From positions 806,001 through 870,000 of the forward strand of contig BQFW01000005.1 of assembly GCA_020891255.1 (NCBI GenBank): a stretch of 64,000 nt of DNA, written 5' to 3'. The stretch is from Entomortierella parvispora E1425. Taxonomy: Eukaryota; Fungi; Mortierellomycota. Of this stretch, positions 29,127 through 38,029 are shown in pieces. The translations under genes were made by a program, and so were the position numbers. Positions within the stretch are counted from its first letter, which is position 1, and every line of letters begins with the position of its first letter. Under the pieces are notes generated by a model, which had not been told where the DNA came from, ran no database searches, and worked only from the letters and a program-made list of their open reading frames with translations.

Positions 29127-30653
29127 CTAACCCAGAGGGATGGCCTGAGGGAATGTGAAAAGGTTGTCTGGGTCAACCGCCCTTTTGATCTCTACAAGTC
29201 GAGCCAGATTCTCGCCATAATATGCCTGTAGCCCGTTGGGAATGCCATGCTCCATGTAGTTCTGATACGCCTCTAGAACGTCTCCTGAGCTGTACGCCGC
29301 ATGTAGCTCATGCGAGAATCGGTCGCTCCACTCTGCACAAGTCGTGCAAATCGAGTCCGAATGCCACGATCTTGGCGCAACTCTTTCAACCCCATACTGG
29401 ACACTGTACAAAACACCTCGGTGATTGTCAAAGGCTGACGGTGACTTGGGGTCGTCGATCTTGCCACCCCACGTCTCCATGGTGACCGACGAGATCAATC
29501 TGTGCTTTGGATTCTCAATATCACTGGGACCATTGCTGAGATGTCGGCTGATGATTTCCAACTCATTTTCTGACAATGGGTTGCGATAGAGAAGAGACCG
29601 GAGACGTAGAGAAAGCGAGAAATTTCCTATTGGATTATCGATCTTTGTGCCGTCTAAAGCGGCCCATGTGGACGCGGCCTGGAACCAAGTGCCCTCACGG
29701 AACTCTATCTGTTGAGGTGCTCCTGTGAGACTGAGCAGTGGGGCAACAGCGGCCTTCGCCTTGTCCTGTGAACCAAGAAACGTGCCCAGGAAAACCGTCT
29801 TGTTTTGGCCAATGTAGAGCATGGCTGAGATATCGTTCGCACTGATCTTGGCTGACCATTTTCCAAACGAATCCATGACAGCCCGATGCTCACTCCAAGG
29901 GAACCGCACTCGCATGACAGTGACTTTTGGTGGGGCCTTGTACGCCTGGATCTTGAATTCTGTCACCAGTCCAAAGGATCCTCCACCTGCGCCTCTCAAT
30001 GCCCAAAACAAGTCTGATCTCGACGTGTCGCTGATGTGCCACACCTCGCCCTCGGCACTGATCATGTTCAATCCCACAACGTTGTCAGACAACATTCCAT
30101 ACTTGCGTCCGAGCATGCCTACACCACCTCCAAGAGCATGTCCACCAATACCAACACCAGGGCACGTCCCTGCAGGAACGAGATATTCGCCGGCAGTCCA
30201 TAGCTTTGTATACACAGACCCAAGACGGTGGCCGGCCCCTATTGTGACGATACCGGTGTCATGGTCTATTGAAAAGTGCTGAAACAGGGTGAGGTCGATT
30301 ACGAGCGTGCCTTGGCTACCACCACTATACCCCTCAAAGGAATGACCTCCAGATCGAGGCACGACAGAGACATGGTGGGAAGCGGCACACAAGACAGCGG
30401 CTGCAGCATCGTTCTCGGAAGCAGGGTAGAAGATGGCGCCTGGACGATGGTCAAATGCTTTGTTGAAGAGCACTCGATCTTTATCATAGGTGGGTGAGGA
30501 TGGAGTGCTCAGATAAGATGACCTGTTGCCTTGTATAGTCTGAAGACATTCGATAAAGCTGGTTGCGGGTGTGTTGGCGAGGCTGGTGTATCGAATGTAG
30601 GCAAGCGTCGTGAAAAAGGCTGTGGCGGCCAGAGTTTTGAAGAAAGTATACAT
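29127..30653 (-). CDS. Secreted BBE-like (FAD_binding_4 plus BBE) oxidoreductase, intronless, about 508 aa
   Basis: Hydrophobic N-terminus. RSGGHSF (His) and GTCPGVG (Cys) are the positions used for bicovalent FAD. Also LFWALRGAGGGSFG and a C-terminal YQNY..YYGENLARLVEIKRAVDPDNLF. Confidence 0.9.
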   Translation of the reverse strand: MYTFFKTLAATAFFTTLAYIRYTSLANTPATSFIECLQTIQGNRSSYLSTPSSPTYDKDRVLFNKAFDHRPGAIFYPASENDAAAAVLCAASHHVSVVPRSGGHSFEGYSGGSQGTLVIDLTLFQHFSIDHDTGIVTIGAGHRLGSVYTKLWTAGEYLVPAGTCPGVGIGGHALGGGVGMLGRKYGMLSDNVVGLNMISAEGEVWHISDTSRSDLFWALRGAGGGSFGLVTEFKIQAYKAPPKVTVMRVRFPWSEHRAVMDSFGKWSAKISANDISAMLYIGQNKTVFLGTFLGSQDKAKAAVAPLLSLTGAPQQIEFREGTWFQAASTWAALDGTKIDNPIGNFSLSLRLRSLLYRNPLSENELEIISRHLSNGPSDIENPKHRLISSVTMETWGGKIDDPKSPSAFDNHRGVLYSVQYGVERVAPRSWHSDSICTTCAEWSDRFSHELHAAYSSGDVLEAYQNYMEHGIPNGLQAYYGENLARLVEIKRAVDPDNLFTFPQAIPLG

Positions 30654-31118
30654 GAGAGTGAGAAAGACAAGTTGAAAAGTAAGCAACGGCCCGCCTGGAA
30701 TATCACAGCAGTGAACCCGTTGCCCTTCGCCCCTCGCTCCTCCAAAAGAAAAAAAAAGGAGAGAAAAGAAAAAAAAAGTGGCATCATCAGCTTTACTGCC
30801 CTGGAACCCTCGTCCAGTTTCATTGTCCCGTATCTTCCTGGGGGCCTTCCCCCTTGGATCCCTGCTTGCCCTGTCACTTGCTCAACCTTTTGTTCTTCTT
30901 CCCATTTTGGAATCGAGGGGCCACCTCATCTGCATTTGTTCCATTACTACGTTGCTACTGCACTTCCTCCGCCAAAAAAAATTTCTTTACTATAAAGTGG
31001 ACCGGACCTTTTCATTTTGCCCCACACCAAACAACAAAACCACTCCACAATCAAGAATAGGGCACTCATCCAGCAAGTTGCTTGACCTCCCATCCTACCT
31101 CTCCACGCAAGAACTAAA

Positions 31119-31235
31119 ATGAAGCCGACCTATCTCTGCATCCTGGCCGCCCTTGTTACCTTTGTCCACGCTGCCCCTGTACCTGGCGTTTCGTTGGATC
31201 CTTCAGTCGATCTCGACGTTTACATTGCTCTCTGA
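31119..31235 (+). CDS. Tiny secreted peptide precursor A (38 aa): MKPTYLCILAALVTFVHA-APVPGVSLDPSVDLDVYIAL
   Basis: Hand-translated; below the ORF-track cutoff. ATG context is AAAATG, with TATAAAG at 30991. Classical signal peptide. Paralogous to 32442-32567. Confidence 0.75.
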   Translation: MKPTYLCILAALVTFVHAAPVPGVSLDPSVDLDVYIAL

Positions 31236-32441
31236 AGTGCGAGCCTGTCTTAGTTCTTGATAGATTGTACCGAAGTAGTCAAAGTCGATCGACGCCTGTA
31301 GTCCCAAGTTCAAAACAGACAACGCGTCAAAATAAACAGCTGGAGGGCTGACTCGAGGTCCTTTCCAGGCAAAAAAACAAGCGCTCTATATGCAGTGCTG
31401 AACAAACCAGAGAAAAAAATGGATTGTGCGCAAGGTGATAGGGATTCCCAAAATCGCTCACACGAAGTGCAGCATCGAGGAGGGACGCGCACTGCAGACA
31501 CACCATCTGTCACAAGGATGACCTGGGGCAGGCGGCGCGTGCATTCACGTCTGCGCTGGGGCCGCAGTTCAGTTGAAATGAACCCGATACTATCAGTCAG
31601 TCGTAAAAGAATGAGCAGGTCCTGCTGTCATCTCCAAGGGAATAGCAAGAGTAATTAGGAAATGGTTGACAGTTCTTGACCCCCTGTAACGTACAACACC
31701 AAAAAAACACCTGGGAAAACTAAACTTGTGGTAAAAAAATTCAGGGACATGTATCTTTGGACCCAAAAATAACCGCAAGGGGTTGGGAGGACATCTTGAT
31801 CAACGCAAACCTGACAACAAGTGCAGGACTGGAAAGGGGACCAAAATACAAACATCATGTACATACTGCACCAAGCCTGATCTGTTTTGACACACACCAT
31901 CCCTGCACCCTGAACTTTGTCCCGGTATCTTTCTGGAGATCCCCCACCTGGATTTCTTGGTTGCCCCATTGATTGTCCCGCTATTTGCCATGACAAACCC
32001 ATGACTTCGCCCCTTTCTTTTACCTTTTGCTCTGGAACTCACCTCATCCTTGTATATGTCCCATCTGCAATTGAAGATCCCCTTACTCCCTTGTCTTTTT
32101 ACTTGCTTTGAGCCCTCTGCTGCTTCCCTCCTTTGATTACTACCCTATTGTGGTTTATCCAGTGTCCATCTTGAGTTCGAGTATAAAAAGAACTCACGAC
32201 CCTTCTTTCCACCTGTCTCCAACACAACAAAGTCATACCTTTTTGACCATCACCCCGCGGTAAATAGACAATACATGATGACAGAGTCTTCACTTTGTAA
32301 TAACTTCTAGTGGCAGAGAGACTTTACATGCCTGACTAAGTTTTCCCTCTTACAACTTGTCATGATTTCAGTACTCGGAGCACGACACGGACCCACAAGC
32401 TGTTTTATCCCTCCTAGCATCAAAACCAAGCAAGAAACAAC

Positions 32442-32567
32442 ATGAAGCTGACCTACTTGTGCATCCTCGCTGCCACTGTAATCTTTGCGGGGGCCGTCCC
32501 TACTCCTGGTTCGATTGTAGATGTCGCCATTTCGCTTGGTGACACCCCAATTGATCTTAATCTCTGA
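32442..32567 (+). CDS. Tiny secreted peptide precursor B (41 aa): MKLTYLCILAATVIFAGA-VPTPGSIVDVAISLGDTPIDLNL
   Basis: Hand-translated. ATG context is AACATG, with TATAAAAAG at 32182 and a candidate 5'UTR intron at 32260-32417. The signal peptide is closely similar to precursor A. Confidence 0.75.
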   Translation: MKLTYLCILAATVIFAGAVPTPGSIVDVAISLGDTPIDLNL

Positions 32568-32614
32568 ACACCCCTAGTAGTAACAGATGCTCCTATGCTC
32601 CTTTGAAGCAACGG

Positions 32615-32681
32615 CCAAAAGAGGTCAGGCCCACCAAAAGAAGTCAGACCCACCAAAAGAAGTCAGACCCACCAAAAGAAG
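32615..32681 (+). repeat. 19-bp minisatellite (ccaaaagaagtcagaccca), about 3.5 copies
   Basis: Units at 32615-32633 (2 mismatches), 32634-32652 and 32653-32671, plus a partial unit. Confidence 0.9.
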
Positions 32682-33167
32682 AAAATAAACCTTGGAACTC
32701 TCAAAGATGAAATCTGAAAACAACGCCATGGCCGATTTTCTAGACGTGACTCTGCCACTAACATCAACATGACACTTCTGCGAGCATGGTTGCAAAGACT
32801 ATCAAACTGGGGATGGAGCACTGCCGACACTACGACGTCAATTCTAACGCCGCCTGCCCATTCTGAAGTCAAGCTTGCACAGTGCAGTGTCTCAGATTTT
32901 TGAACGGACGACGATGCTGTGGTAGTAAGGGAATGAACATGGCGTGGATTTCTCTACACTCAATGTTGCTAAGGTGTACCACTGGATAACAGATAAGATA
33001 ATGCAGAGTGGAGATGCGTTTTTGTCCAACCGGATGAGAGTGTGGTGGCAGACACAATCAACTCCCCCCCCCCCGAAGCTCTCGCTCGAAAGGAAACTCA
33101 AACCGTCGCTCAATTTTGTATGTTGTACGACAAGCAGAGAGAGCCATTGTTTACTATTATACCTGTG

Positions 33168-35468
33168 TCATCTTCTAATTCTCTCGAAACGATAGGTACC
33201 ACTCGATATCTTGAAATCCAGCTCAGGGAACTGAGATGCAATCAAAGTTGCCAGCTTTTCAACGTACACATCCGGCATCCCTGTTTGATGGATGGTCAAG
33301 CGCTTCATCCCAGCGACATATGACCTGACCCTTGGGTCTCCTTTTCGTCTTTGGAAGCGATCAAGGATGGCCAGAAACTGCTCGATCCGGCCCTCGTGAA
33401 TTTGAATCGGTTGAGCCTGCAAGAACATCTTCTGTGTTTCCAACCGAAGGTCACATTCGACGACTTGATATTCGCTATACCCTTCAACACCTGGACTGAT
33501 CCTTGTATGGCTAAGTAAAAGGGCGTCCCTTCTCTTTATGAGATCCGTCGTGTGTTCGCTCTTTGGAAGGGCCTGAAACTCGGACCTAGACAAGAAGTTC
33601 AGCGACATCTCAAGAGACTCGAGGCGGTTGATGCCAGTGTTGCTAAGATTGTTGCTATTGCGGCTACTAGAGTGATCCCTCTCTAGACTGCCCGTGCTAC
33701 CAACGTCCTGCGAAACCGATGGTAGTGACGACAAGGTTGACGGATGGAGTGTTGCTGGTGCGATGGCGTTGAAAAAGGTGAGATCTGTAAAACTGCAGTT
33801 TGGCACAGCAAGGTGCTCGAGTCGTGGCAAGGATCGAACCAGGTAGTCGGCGAATTGTTGACCACTTTTCTCACTAATGTTCTTGGCACCACAGCCGCCG
33901 AGATAGATGTACTTCAAACTGGAGCATGCAGGGAAGGCCATCAATGGCTGTTGACGTACTTCCACCCGTGTCTCTTCTTTTCTCCCCTCTGCTTTCCCTT
34001 CCTCCTCCCCTCCAGTATCCGTCATGACGGCTGTGGTGGTTGTGACGGTGGTTGCGGTGGTCTTTGTACCAGTACTTGCAGTGACATCCAGAGTCTCCTC
34101 GCCAGTTTTAACCAAGGGGATGGGCATATCAAACAAGTCCAAGAACTCATCGACAGTTAACGGCAAAGAAAGTCTTTCCAGTCGATGAAGTCGAGGGGTA
34201 TCTTTCAATCTCTGGAGCCAATCGACGCATTCAGTTGATCTATCGCTGGTGTCCTTAATACCCAGCTCCCGAAGAAATCCCTCCTGTGGCCTTCCTGAGA
34301 TTGGGTCCACTCGCATTTCATCCAGTAGCTCACTGAGAACCCTGTCAGAAGGAGTAATGGATCCAGCTGCGTTGCTTTCAAGTCCCTTATTGTAGATGAA
34401 GCCTGTGACATACGATGTGAGGACGGTGGGGTCACAAAGTCGACCTAAGAGTAACTTGGCGTATCGGGCCTCCGTTGTCATAAGAGACAATTTCTTCAAG
34501 CGCAGGGTTCCTGAAGCTCTGGCAGAGTCGCGTTCAAAGGCCAAATCATCGGTAATACGCTCGTCCGTATTGCCAATCGACAAGAAATTCACCTCTTCAA
34601 GTCCCGGTGCCTGCTCTTTTAGTGCATAGAGCTCATTCACGCTGCAAATTGAAGTCGCAATGTCAAATATCCTAAGTGTCCTCGAAGGTCTCGCTGTTGA
34701 AAAGGATGTCAGGAGACGGGTCTCTCTCTCCATGTCGTTCCAGCAGACAGGACCAAGGAAGGAAGTGGCAGATGCGATCTCGGGGCAGGTCTTGAGTTGA
34801 AGGATCCTGTACAATGATGGAATCTCCACCCTAAACCTCTTGATCACTCTCAATTCCTCAAGACCTGAGAAGGCTGATTCAGATGGGAAATAATCCGAGG
34901 TGGGCAAAAGGCCGGTGCAGCTGTCAGGCAAGTTGGAGTGAAAGGTATCTTGGACAGATTGGCCAAACTTGGATCCAAATATAAACTGGTGTGACTTAAT
35001 GCGAAAGACAGCGGCGGTCTGGGGGTTTTGTGAGAATAGGCATGAAAGCGACTGGGTAATCTCTTCCGAGTGTGGCCCCTCCAGCACAATCTTGACTTTT
35101 GCCAGATGAACACAGTTTCGTGCGACCATGGAACAAAAATCGGGGATGATGGTATTATCCTGCGGCTCCAGTCCTCGACTCCTGTTGAACTTATCAGTCT
35201 CTTCAGTGATGATCCTTGGAAACGTGAAGGTGAGTCCTCCGATGATGGATGGCGCCTCTTGGATGCAATTGTGCTCTATAGCATAGTCAGCCATGAGATG
35301 GATCCGAAAAAACTGGTTTGCGGTGGCCATGAACAGCTTGGATACCAATCGCAAGGATCGTAGGGCGTTCTTCTCGTCTCTTAGCCATGAAAAGATGCAG
35401 GTCAGGACCTTTGGGAGAGACACTGCCTTCTCCATGGATCCAGATGCGGGAGCCAAGGCGCTATCCAT
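33168..35468 (-). CDS. F-box-like / LRR paralogue 3, intronless, about 766 aa
   Basis: Start MDSALAPASGSMEKAVSLPKVLTCIFSWL at ATG 35468 aligns with the paralogue starts. The upstream extension to 35708 is non-homologous. Confidence 0.85.
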   Translation of the reverse strand: MDSALAPASGSMEKAVSLPKVLTCIFSWLRDEKNALRSLRLVSKLFMATANQFFRIHLMADYAIEHNCIQEAPSIIGGLTFTFPRIITEETDKFNRSRGLEPQDNTIIPDFCSMVARNCVHLAKVKIVLEGPHSEEITQSLSCLFSQNPQTAAVFRIKSHQFIFGSKFGQSVQDTFHSNLPDSCTGLLPTSDYFPSESAFSGLEELRVIKRFRVEIPSLYRILQLKTCPEIASATSFLGPVCWNDMERETRLLTSFSTARPSRTLRIFDIATSICSVNELYALKEQAPGLEEVNFLSIGNTDERITDDLAFERDSARASGTLRLKKLSLMTTEARYAKLLLGRLCDPTVLTSYVTGFIYNKGLESNAAGSITPSDRVLSELLDEMRVDPISGRPQEGFLRELGIKDTSDRSTECVDWLQRLKDTPRLHRLERLSLPLTVDEFLDLFDMPIPLVKTGEETLDVTASTGTKTTATTVTTTTAVMTDTGGEEEGKAEGRKEETRVEVRQQPLMAFPACSSLKYIYLGGCGAKNISEKSGQQFADYLVRSLPRLEHLAVPNCSFTDLTFFNAIAPATLHPSTLSSLPSVSQDVGSTGSLERDHSSSRNSNNLSNTGINRLESLEMSLNFLSRSEFQALPKSEHTTDLIKRRDALLLSHTRISPGVEGYSEYQVVECDLRLETQKMFLQAQPIQIHEGRIEQFLAILDRFQRRKGDPRVRSYVAGMKRLTIHQTGMPDVYVEKLATLIASQFPELDFKISSGTYRFERIRR

Positions 35469-35788
35469 TTCTTGGAGTGTGGGGATAGTGGCTCCAAAAA
35501 AGGGGAAAGAAGGTGAGAAGATATCAGTTATTTGTGCAGAAGGTGAATGAATTGGAAAGTAGGGAGAAGGAATGGCCCTTTTATTTGCATGCGGGGCACA
35601 GCGTTTATTGCGAAATGGAGGGTGGTGATGTGGAAAAGTAAAAAAAAAATCAGTAGGGCTTGCCTCTGGCGCAGCGCAAAGGACATGCAGGTGCGCGGCT
35701 GAATCCATATCATTACTCCCTCATTCGCTTCACGCACCGACACTAGTCATTGCTATTGCTGAGATTTATTGCATGGCAGACGATTGAA

Positions 35789-38029
35789 CTATGAAAACAG
35801 ACGTCTTGCTGGGTGATGAGCACTACTTGACACGGTGAAATCCAACCTGGGAAACTGCGATGCGACCCGGGCTTTCAACTTTTCCACATAGGCATTCGGC
35901 ATCCCTGTCTGATAGACGATTATCTGCCTCAACCCTTCAATATCTACACTCGATCCAACACCTGAGCAAGCAGGGACTTTGTCTCCACGGTCATCCTTCA
36001 TGGACCACCGACCGCTCTTTCGTCTTTGGAATCGATCAAGGAAGGCCAAAAACTGTTCGATCCGGTCCTCGTGCACTTGAATCGGTCGAGCTTCCAACAA
36101 CATCTTCTGTCTCTCCTGTTTAAGTTCCGCCTCGACAGTGAGATAGTCGTCATATCCCTTCTCGCCGGGCCTAAACATGGGATACTTTGCCAGAATGTTG
36201 TCTCTTCTCTGTAAGAGCTCCATCGCGTGCTCACTCTTTGGAAGAGAATGAAGCTCGGATAGAGACAAGAATTCGAACCTGACCAAAAGAGATTCCAAGC
36301 GGTTGAGGCCCAATTGTGGATGAAGTGCTTGTGGTGCGATGGTGTTCAAAAAGGTGAAATCTGTCAAAGTGCAAGTGGGTAAAACAAGATGCTTGATTCG
36401 TGGTAAATATCGAACCAAGTAGTCAGCGAATCGTTCAAGGCTCTTGTCGCTTATCTGGATGGCATCACCGCCAGATAAACGGAAGGTCAAGAGACTGGAA
36501 CATGCTGGGAATGGTAGCTGTGGCTGATGCTGTGGCCTTGCAACTACCCTTTCGTCTTGATCCTCCTCTTGAGTGACGGTCGTGATGCTTGTAGTGGTCG
36601 TGCAGGTAGATGCAGTCGTTACAGTGGAACTTGCAACAGGATCCATACCGCTTTCAGAGACAGTAATCATTGAATTGGATGAATCGAACATGTCCAAGAA
36701 TCCATCGACATTCAGCGGCAAAGAAAGCCTCTCCAGTTGATAAAGCCAAGGGGTATTCTTCAATTTCTGGAGCCAATCGACTCGCCCAAGCATTCTATCG
36801 TAAGAAGTGATAGCAAGCTCCTGAAGGAACCTCTCCTGCGACCTTTCTGAGACTGAAATCATCCCCATCTCATCAAACAGCTCATTGAGAGCTGCGTAAG
36901 TGAACGGAGCCGTGCCATTATTGTTTGTCGGTATACTTGGTCTGCGGCCGTTGATGAAACCCGTGACGAACGATTCGAGGACAGAGAGGTCAAGGAGCTG
37001 ACATAGGAGTAACTTGAGGTACCGATCAGATATCGTCAGCAGAGTCATTTTCTTTAGGCGTAGGGTCCTTGGTGCTCTGGTAGAGTCGAGTGCAAGGGCT
37101 GCTTCGTCCGTGATGGACTCGTTCATATTGCAGATTGTCGCCGCGCCAACCTCTTCTAACATGGGTGCCTGCTCTTTCAATGCATAGAGATCATCTACGC
37201 TGCAGTCTGAGTTGACAATGTCAAAGATCCTAAGTGACAATGAAGGCTTTGCTGTTGAGGAAGCTTTCGGCACACGAGCTTCTCTCTCCGCACGATTCCA
37301 GTAGACAGGACCTAGAAAAGACGTGGCTGCGGCAATCTCAGGACAGATCTTGAGTTGAAGAATCCTGTACAGCGCTGGTGCTTGCACCATGAACCTCTTG
37401 ATCAACCTTAATTCCTCAAGGCCAGAGAAGGGCGACTCTGTTGGTATATAATCCATTGTAGGCAAAAGGCCAGTGCAGCTATCAGGCAGATTGGAATCTT
37501 GCACATCTTGAACGACAGATTCAACAAATTTGAATCCGAGCCCAATCTCAAGTGACTTGATGCGAAAGGCGGCTGCGCTCTGGGGGTTTTGCGAAAATAA
37601 ACAAGAGAGCAATTGGGATACCTCATCCGAGTGCGGTCCTTCCAGCACAATCTTGACTTTTTCCAGATGCACACAGTTTCGAGCAACCAAGGAACAAAAA
37701 GCAAGACTGACAACACTATTTTGTGGCTCTAGTCCCAGATGCCGGTTGAGCGCATCCGCCTCTTCGGTAATGATCCTTGGAAACGTGAAAGTGAGTCCTC
37801 CGATGATGGTTGGCGCTTCTTGGATGCAGTTGTGTTCTATAGCGTAGTCAGCCGCGAGGTGGACCCGAAAGAATTGGTTTGCCATGGCAAAGAACTCCTT
37901 GGATACCAGTCGAAGAGATCGAATTGTGCGCCTCTCGTTCTTCAGCCACGAGAAAATGTAGGTCAGCACCTCTGGAAGACAAATGGCCCTCTCCATGAAT
38001 CCAGATGAAAGAATCGAAGCATTATCCAT
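35789..38029 (-). CDS. F-box-like / LRR paralogue 4, intronless, 746 aa
   Basis: MDNASILSSGFMERAICLPEVLTYIFSWL; shares ADYAIEHNCIQEAP and LQLKICPEIAAATSFLGPVYWNR with the other copies. Confidence 0.85.
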   Translation of the reverse strand: MDNASILSSGFMERAICLPEVLTYIFSWLKNERRTIRSLRLVSKEFFAMANQFFRVHLAADYAIEHNCIQEAPTIIGGLTFTFPRIITEEADALNRHLGLEPQNSVVSLAFCSLVARNCVHLEKVKIVLEGPHSDEVSQLLSCLFSQNPQSAAAFRIKSLEIGLGFKFVESVVQDVQDSNLPDSCTGLLPTMDYIPTESPFSGLEELRLIKRFMVQAPALYRILQLKICPEIAAATSFLGPVYWNRAEREARVPKASSTAKPSLSLRIFDIVNSDCSVDDLYALKEQAPMLEEVGAATICNMNESITDEAALALDSTRAPRTLRLKKMTLLTISDRYLKLLLCQLLDLSVLESFVTGFINGRRPSIPTNNNGTAPFTYAALNELFDEMGMISVSERSQERFLQELAITSYDRMLGRVDWLQKLKNTPWLYQLERLSLPLNVDGFLDMFDSSNSMITVSESGMDPVASSTVTTASTCTTTTSITTVTQEEDQDERVVARPQHQPQLPFPACSSLLTFRLSGGDAIQISDKSLERFADYLVRYLPRIKHLVLPTCTLTDFTFLNTIAPQALHPQLGLNRLESLLVRFEFLSLSELHSLPKSEHAMELLQRRDNILAKYPMFRPGEKGYDDYLTVEAELKQERQKMLLEARPIQVHEDRIEQFLAFLDRFQRRKSGRWSMKDDRGDKVPACSGVGSSVDIEGLRQIIVYQTGMPNAYVEKLKARVASQFPRLDFTVSSSAHHPARRLFS

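Follow-up and report, generated by a model that had tools for sequence, protein, structure and literature searches.

Paralogous micro-genes in an unannotated gap of Entomortierella parvispora as probable members of a Mortierellaceae family of minimal secreted-peptide precursors

In the soil fungus Entomortierella parvispora E1425 (assembly GCA_020891255.1, contig BQFW01000005.1), a 2.5-kb gap lies between a minus-strand BBE-type FAD oxidase gene and a minus-strand open reading frame (ORF) of 846 amino acids (aa), and in the public record the space from the oxidase gene to the next large gene is free of called genes. The window referred to below is the whole 64,000-nucleotide (nt) stretch of this contig that was analysed. 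A first-pass annotation proposed that the gap hosts two unannotated, paralogous micro-genes, here named A and B, that encode processed secreted peptides. The question raised by this locus is whether two such short ORFs are genes at all and, if they are, what kind of product they would deliver. In our assessment, A and B are probably independent, intact and transcribed genes of an undescribed Mortierellaceae family, the members of which are minimal secreted-peptide precursors (38-47 aa) with a diversifying, anionic and amphipathic cargo.

Paralogy and transcription of the two micro-genes

Both ORFs are present on the plus strand where they had been placed:

31119..31235, plus strand: micro-gene A, coding sequence (CDS) of 38 codons plus TGA, with the predicted signal peptide at 31119-31172, x-P-x-P-G at 31173-31187 and the acidic tail at 31188-31232
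32442..32567, plus strand: micro-gene B, CDS of 41 codons plus TGA, with the predicted signal peptide at 32442-32495, x-P-x-P-G at 32496-32510 and the acidic tail at 32511-32564

The two products (38 and 41 aa) share the features described for them, namely M-K-x-T-Y-L-C-I-L-A-A-x-V-x-F, a small-x-small site ending at residue 18, and x-P-x-P-G at residues 19-23; their alignment contains 19 identical columns, mostly within residues 1-23. The parts following residue 18 (20 and 23 aa) are free of Cys, Lys and Arg, with a net charge of -3 each. When either A or B was searched against the window with tblastn, the sole match was the other one (E 5e-8 to 9e-10), and a 26-nt degenerate DNA pattern matched at the A and B sites only, where shuffled sequences gave an expectation of 0. 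At the DNA level, the similarity is confined to about -13 to about +75 of the ATG, the flanks cannot be aligned, and the synonymous divergence (dS) between A and B is 0.85. This pattern is the expected remnant of coding-sequence selection after an old duplication. A and B are true paralogues, with a similarity far above chance. The shared CTC-TGA ending exists in both genes but does not extend to the family, the other members ending in TAA after other codons. As had been claimed, each gene has its own TATA box (TATAAA at 30991 for A and at 32182 for B).

Evidence of transcription comes from two sequencing runs of the same sample. Run X1 covers the whole stretch at even depth, as genome data do, whereas run X2 has patchy coverage, adapter remnants and a 112-nt GT..AG skip that is not in X1. 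Because of the spliced joint, the patchy coverage, the adapter remnants and the genome paper, which describes an AUGUSTUS annotation with one TruSeq RNA library (PMC8759367), X2 is taken as RNA-seq. The transcript features are as follows:

30991..30996, plus strand: TATAAA box of A; the RNA contig starts about 45 nt further downstream
31040..31269, plus strand: transcript A (X2 RNA contig 8, 237 nt, depth 15.1), unspliced and spanning all of A, with a 79-nt 5′-untranslated region (5′UTR) free of ATG
32065..32259, plus strand: transcript B exon 1, a 5′UTR free of ATG (X2 RNA contig 9, 483 nt, depth 35.4)
32182..32189, plus strand: TATAAAAA box of B, inside the RNA contig, in a context conserved with the Podila and Mortierella sp. 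AD094 loci
32260..32371, plus strand: B 5′UTR intron, 112 nt, GT..AG, with 4 ATGs inside that are spliced out; overlooked by the first-pass annotation
32372..32659, plus strand: transcript B exon 2, with the whole CDS; the contig end falls within a 19-nt tandem repeat
32615..32681, plus strand: 19-nt tandem repeat of about 3.5 copies in the B 3′UTR, followed by AATAAA at 32684

The raw placement of the B contig was 32065-32258 plus 32371-32659, and the intron was set to 32260..32371 from its GT..AG ends; the same joint assigns transcript B to the plus strand. The AD094 and Podila loci have kept the 5′ splice site of this intron together with its branch-like CTGAC region. X2 depth reaches 15 over A and 35 over B, compared with 2-6 over the oxidase gene, and falls to zero over 31289-31885 and 32682-33278. 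The ATG of the micro-ORF is the first ATG in both mRNAs and has an A at -3. DNA and RNA contigs alike break at the 19-nt repeat.

The first-pass annotation had allowed for two ways in which its proposal could fail at the RNA level, namely that the ORFs lack transcripts or that they are first exons spliced to larger downstream ORFs. Short X2 contigs cover both ORFs fully, pass their stop codons unspliced and are followed by zero depth, which holds for the main transcript form. A and B are thus short mRNAs, with the micro-ORF as their first and main ORF and not as a first exon, in the forms kept by the assembler.

Relatives, conserved N-terminus and hypervariable tail

Orthologous loci were reached via a protein search with the oxidase and then retrieved. 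Three of them contain a member of the family:

L001:5717-5836, minus strand: Mortierella sp. AD094 member, 39 aa, about 1 kb upstream of the oxidase gene and divergent from it
L003:8680-8823, minus strand: Podila verticillata member, 47 aa, about 1 kb upstream of the oxidase gene and divergent from it; identical to database protein P0124
L035:1648-1779, minus strand: Podila clonocystis member, 43 aa, about 1 kb upstream of the oxidase gene and divergent from it

None of the three is annotated in the NCBI records (0/3), and the divergent arrangement of micro-gene and oxidase gene is conserved in four species. A further orthologue was found in run X3, a second strain labelled E. parvispora that is about 93% identical to E1425 in the oxidase gene. 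Its contig runs from the oxidase gene into the A orthologue and matches A up to the codon of Gly23; past this point, it is diverged over the 30 nt that were read but stays in frame for at least 10 more codons, beginning with G-I-S-L-D. In the same strain (window positions 30686-31062), two stretches between the oxidase gene and A are swapped for unrelated sequence of similar length (126 to 124 nt and 176 to 189 nt), while the flanking genes are kept. The first-pass proposal depended on homologues with a conserved frame, and the frame is indeed kept in three other species in synteny, in a second strain and in metagenomes.

At the protein level, the family is nearly absent from databases. Neither the A nor the B peptide is on record as a gene product by exact look-up. 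HMMER over 1.84 billion representatives returned two true matches, P0124 and P0122, the latter being an ORF call from a soil metagenome whose last 40 residues constitute the family member; the other matches (P0121, P0123, P0125 and P0126) were dismissed on inspection as repeat-protein false positives. A five-member profile against 5.8 billion proteins again yielded P0122 and P0124 only, and no named homologue was found in this set. The description of the genes as unannotated is therefore borne out, since the gap holds no called gene, neither peptide is recorded and the whole family is represented by two unnamed ORF calls. The A plus B alignment gave no match in a word-index protein search, hmmscan at E up to 10 gave Pfam matches below threshold only (PGG and DUF7419), Rfam matched no family (one long non-coding RNA match was sub-threshold), and resemblances in a language-model protein Atlas did not exceed 0.64 and serve as leads only. 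A literature search returned no paper on comparable Mortierella peptide precursors.

Among metagenome contigs, a DNA scan with a long relaxed codon pattern gave 0 matches, while a short N-terminal pattern gave 28 loci, one of which (L028) belongs to the family. Nearly all of the other loci are bacterial lipoprotein signal peptides or non-coding matches; L006, L013, L020, L021, L026 and others encode Bacteroidota-like lipoprotein signal peptides starting with M-K-K-T-Y-L-Y-I-L-A-G. These reflect convergent signal-peptide composition rather than homology, a warning for short-pattern searches. Similarly, residues 1-39 of P0122 and the ORF of L035 upstream of 1779 were rejected as extensions by the ORF caller through the 3′ part of the 5′UTR intron, and the apparent conservation of F-S-W-L-T-K-I is spurious because it is the translated branch-site region.

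Across five aligned members, the invariant columns are M1, K2, T4, Y5, I8, L9, A10, V13, F15, A18, P20, P22 and G23; P. clonocystis, which lies outside this alignment, has Ile at position 15. Each member has an n-region with one Lys, a 13-residue hydrophobic core (T4-V16), a small-x-small site ending at residue 18 (V-H-A, A-G-A, V-S-A or V-T-A), and [AV]-P-x-P-G, and the two X-Pro dipeptides past the predicted cleavage site are invariant in all full-length members. Over codons 1-23, the ratio of nonsynonymous to synonymous substitution (dN/dS, Nei-Gojobori) is 0.14-0.34, with dS of 0.5-0.9 (0.18 for the closest pair), which indicates that this region is constrained as protein.

The tails that follow (15-24 residues) cannot be aligned, apart from a semi-conserved [IV]-D-L near the end in 5/6 tails. 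Their composition is strongly biased: among 100 pooled residues, 20% are Asp and 52% belong to V/L/I/M/F/A, whereas C, E, F, H, K, R and W do not occur (P about 4e-17 against the six-frame background of the window; P = 5e-7 for the absence of K/R alone). The tail of P. clonocystis, a later find outside the pool, has one Phe and otherwise fits this composition. The alternation of hydrophobic and polar residues noted in the first-pass annotation is significant in A (shuffle p 0.0005), while in B it is borderline (p 0.07); the hydrophobic moment at 170 degrees (beta-strand) exceeds that of shuffles in A (p 0.0005) and P. verticillata (p 0.03).

How fast the tail changes was measured between two close relatives, AD094 and P. 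clonocystis, by segment:

300 nt upstream: 93% identical
Signal plus junction: 66/69 (96%)
Tail: 20/48 (42%), plus a 12-nt in-frame indel
Stop codon and first 70 nt of the 3′UTR: 84%

At a flank divergence of 8.4%, the probability of at least 28 mismatches in 48 tail sites is 2.5e-18. The stop codon is common to both species and lies within the conserved CTAATCCCG. Likewise, the A and X3 tails differ at most codons, in frame, despite about 93% oxidase identity, and they retain G-[IV]-S-L-D, the codons of which differ by synonymous changes and, for serine, by codon family. The neutral rate is a ceiling for relaxed constraint. Since relaxed constraint cannot exceed it, a tail that changes faster than its flanks implies either strong diversifying selection or cassette replacement from paralogues; under both, the frame, stop position and composition of the cargo are kept. 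The earlier suggestion of a conserved signal with a diverged cargo is thus strongly confirmed, both by dN/dS in codons 1-23 and by the AD094/P. clonocystis tail relative to its flanks.

Proposed processing, possible role and competing readings

In the explanation that we favour, the precursor would comprise an 18-residue cleavable signal peptide, the invariant [AV]-P-x-P-G junction and a cargo of 15-24 residues that is rich in Asp, Val, Leu and Ile and lacks basic residues, with alternating polar and hydrophobic residues in most members and the semi-conserved [IV]-D-L near its end. The signal peptide would drive co-translational entry into the endoplasmic reticulum (ER), and signal peptidase would cut after residue 18. 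The two X-Pro dipeptides may then be trimmed stepwise by a dipeptidyl aminopeptidase of the Ste13/DPP-IV type, or may shield the N-terminus from other aminopeptidases, and an anionic, beta-strand-prone amphipathic peptide of about 16-24 residues would be freed outside the hypha. We infer secretion, X-Pro trimming and a surface, signalling or antagonistic activity of the peptides from these features.

As to role, the cargo evolves many times faster than the flanking non-coding DNA yet holds its composition, which suggests diversifying pressure. Such pressure would point to antagonism, defence or recognition in contacts with other organisms; surface-active self-assembly is a less likely source. 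Antagonism, defence or recognition is tentatively ranked first because a conserved signal combined with a hypervariable cargo is a hallmark of the defence peptides of frogs and mussels. Next comes a surface-active beta-sheet function; the lack of canonical hydrophobins in a surveyed Mortierellales genome (bioRxiv 10.1101/2022.08.19.504535) makes it plausible, but a surface role alone leaves the hypervariability unexplained.

Several points weigh against the reading of A and B as secreted-peptide genes or narrow it. The case is built on DNA comparison and RNA contigs, and the signal peptide with its cleavage point was assigned by visual inspection, from the n/h/c regions and the -3/-1 rule. X2 is labelled 'DNA?' in the run listing, so that its RNA status is deduced, and it represents one library in the form of assembled contigs, in which the strand is absent for A and rare isoforms are dropped. 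The B contig begins at 32065, 117 nt upstream of the conserved TATA box; with this box inside the RNA contig, some B transcripts must begin further upstream. The family member on soil metagenome contig Ga0154000_1014881 (L028:1263-1328, minus strand) has an intact signal peptide, the first 11 residues of which equal those of B, but it stops after 21 codons without P-x-P-G, which leaves two readings, a decayed copy or an intron-bearing variant (with no convincing placement found for the intron). The oxidase homologues of Linnemannia elongata, Gryganskiella cystojenkinii, P. verticillata NRRL 6337 and Mortierella sp. 14UC have no family member within 6-10 kb, which implies that the distribution of the family is patchy or that the gene has moved. 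Beta-strand periodicity is borderline in B and AD094 (0.07) and absent in the metagenome member. Finally, gene conversion from unseen paralogues could have replaced the tail as a cassette, in which case its hypervariability would not stem from selection on point mutations.

The alternative that survives best, although improbable, concerns a ribosomally synthesized and post-translationally modified peptide (RiPP), and it involves the gene next to A:

29127..30653, minus strand: BBE-type FAD oxidase gene, 508 aa, Pfam FAD_binding_4 plus BBE

According to it, residues 1-22 are a leader ending in Pro, followed by a variable core of 6-13 residues and an [IV]-D-L follower, and the core is excised and/or modified (for example, cyclised after Pro), perhaps with the co-located secretory oxidase. 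This scheme fits the layout of the precursor, which is short and runs from a conserved N-terminus through a hypervariable middle to a semi-conserved [IV]-D-L at the C-terminus, with Pro directly before the variable part. A second Pro closes the variable part in A, B and X3, but it is missing from the P. verticillata and P. clonocystis tails. The oxidase is linked to the micro-gene over a shared divergent promoter region in all four species; in E1425, the oxidase mRNA contig (30384-30812) extends to at least 30812 and the A contig begins at 31040, leaving about 230 nt or less for this common region. Such linkage at about 1 kb among related genera is nevertheless explicable without function, and the named proteins closest to the oxidase are oxidases of gluco- and xylo-oligosaccharides rather than enzymes that modify peptides. 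Moreover, Kex2 sites and repeated cores are absent, and the genes within 8 kb include none for a DUF3328/UstYa protein, a prolyl oligopeptidase, a methyltransferase or a tyrosinase. Pfam assignments for the large neighbouring ORFs and called genes over this distance are limited to FAD_binding_4/BBE, EMP70 and HSP70, the other neighbours having no family. The two large intronless minus-strand ORFs at 33168-35708 (846 aa) and 35789-38029 (746 aa) are tandem paralogues, 54% identical and without a Pfam domain; the public record lists the two as genes, the former with a shorter, 766-aa start.

Slightly less probable again is a small membrane or ER-resident micro-protein, in which the N-terminus would be an uncleaved anchor and the acidic tail intracellular (for example, in a regulator of membrane proteins), with nothing secreted. 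Many conserved eukaryotic micro-proteins are single-pass membrane regulators, and the hydrophobic N-terminal segment is the most conserved part of the family. A core of only about 13 residues is, however, short for a membrane span, every member carries the -3/-1 small-x-small site and a Pro-rich junction as in cleaved signals, and a tail changing about 5 times faster than neutral flanks is unexpected for an intracellular regulator. In the least probable alternative, the ORFs have no peptide function, and the transcripts are mainly non-coding RNAs, by-products of the oxidase promoter or first exons that belong to rare longer isoforms. Support for the ORFs is indeed at the nucleotide level, A and the oxidase gene share a divergent promoter region and rare spliced isoforms are compatible with the contig data, but the low dN/dS reflects protein-level selection, frame, stop position and a 12-nt in-frame indel are preserved within an otherwise scrambled region, tail composition is extremely biased, the first ATG is in good context with splicing stripping four upstream ATGs from B, and the transcripts match no Rfam family, which makes this reading very unlikely.

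Relation to known secreted peptides and biological meaning

The probable secreted-peptide precursors can be compared with several known systems. The combination of a conserved signal with a hypervariable mature peptide is a signature of frog and mussel defence peptides, and the products of anuran and mussel defence precursors (dermaseptin/brevinin, myticalins and MgCRP-I) are likewise short, linear and amphipathic (PMC6245896, PMC5577615, PMC4558851). Unlike these, the present family has a fungal host, precursors of no more than 47 aa, no acidic pro-piece or Lys-Arg site, an anionic instead of a cationic cargo, and no sequence similarity. Assignment to this class thus concerns architecture and not homology; the signal is under purifying selection, and the cargo evolves faster than its neutral flanks (42% vs 84-96% identity, with the same behaviour in A vs X3). 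By architecture, the family is a new, minimal and anionic fungal variant of the conserved-signal, hypervariable-cargo class of secreted peptides.

Maximin H5 of Bombina maxima exemplifies the anionic antimicrobial peptides, which resemble the predicted products in being short and linear. Maximin H5 is composed of Asp and aliphatic residues and has no basic residues. It has been termed anionic (PMC9908744) and its activity has been covered (PMC5198042). Antibacterial activity does occur among anionic Asp/aliphatic peptides. There is no homology between maximin H5 and the fungal peptides, the activity of which is putative, and origin and precursor type differ.

Among fungal systems, a diaminopeptidase acts on the X-Ala/X-Pro stretch directly after the signal peptide of Yarrowia Lip2, as Ste13 does in yeast, and the two X-Pro dipeptides at this position recall the prepro leaders of alpha-factor and Yarrowia Lip2/XPR2 (PMC9252082). 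In contrast to these leaders, the Mortierellaceae family lacks a pro-region, a Kex2 site and tandem copies of the mature peptide, and its processing is putative. Membership of the alpha-factor type (MF_alpha_N/MF_alpha) was rejected: no member has Lys or Arg after residue 2, each precursor contains a single cargo, and hmmscan, run to an E of 10, gave no MF_alpha match; an Atlas resemblance of 0.56 counts as a lead and no more. Hydrophobins are also small, secreted and amphipathic products of filamentous fungi, with an Atlas score of 0.53 that is again a lead only. They require eight Cys, forming four disulfides. No tail contains Cys, no Pfam Hydrophobin or Eas match was found, and the mature part is 4-5 times shorter.

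Fungal RiPP precursors, including dikaritins (such as ustiloxin) and the MSDIN cycloamanides, share a short precursor, a conserved leader and a variable core with the family. Pro flanks the cores of MSDIN precursors, and a signal peptide is part of dikaritin precursors. A signal peptide is also predicted here, but the Kex2-flanked repeats, Lys-Arg and a DUF3328 (UstYa) gene within 8 kb, as expected of the dikaritin type, are all absent. As for MSDIN/cycloamanides, the leader in the present family is a signal peptide of unrelated sequence, the second Pro occurs in some tails only, and the flanks contain no S9 peptidase (POPB) gene. Since the defining features were examined in each case and are lacking, the family does not belong to the alpha-factor, hydrophobin, dikaritin or MSDIN groups.

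These observations show how genes of about 40 codons are missed by standard fungal annotation (AUGUSTUS in this genome) even if they are expressed and conserved; the present family has neither a Pfam model nor a named protein among 5.8 billion sequences. Its near-invariant export signal, X-Pro-X-Pro junction and cargo that evolves about 5 times faster than the adjacent non-coding DNA form an arms-race or recognition signature that is unusual in fungi. To our knowledge, and within limited literature searches, no such architecture has been reported from Mucoromycota so far. The Mortierellaceae rank with the commonest fungi of soil and roots, and many of them host endobacteria. In a more specific and rather doubtful scenario, Mortierellaceae, mostly without canonical hydrophobins, would use diversifying, Cys-free Asp/aliphatic peptides of 16-24 residues as extracellular beta-sheet amphiphiles or anionic antagonists, the expression of which may be coupled via the divergent promoter to a secreted, H2O2-producing oligosaccharide oxidase. 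If true, a hypervariable 'frog-skin-type' peptide arsenal would be described for the first time in an early-diverging fungus. The family amounts to a small set of peptides that can be synthesised and assayed, and such secreted, fast-evolving anionic peptides are a candidate for mediating the interactions of Mortierellaceae with bacteria, nematodes, plants or each other.

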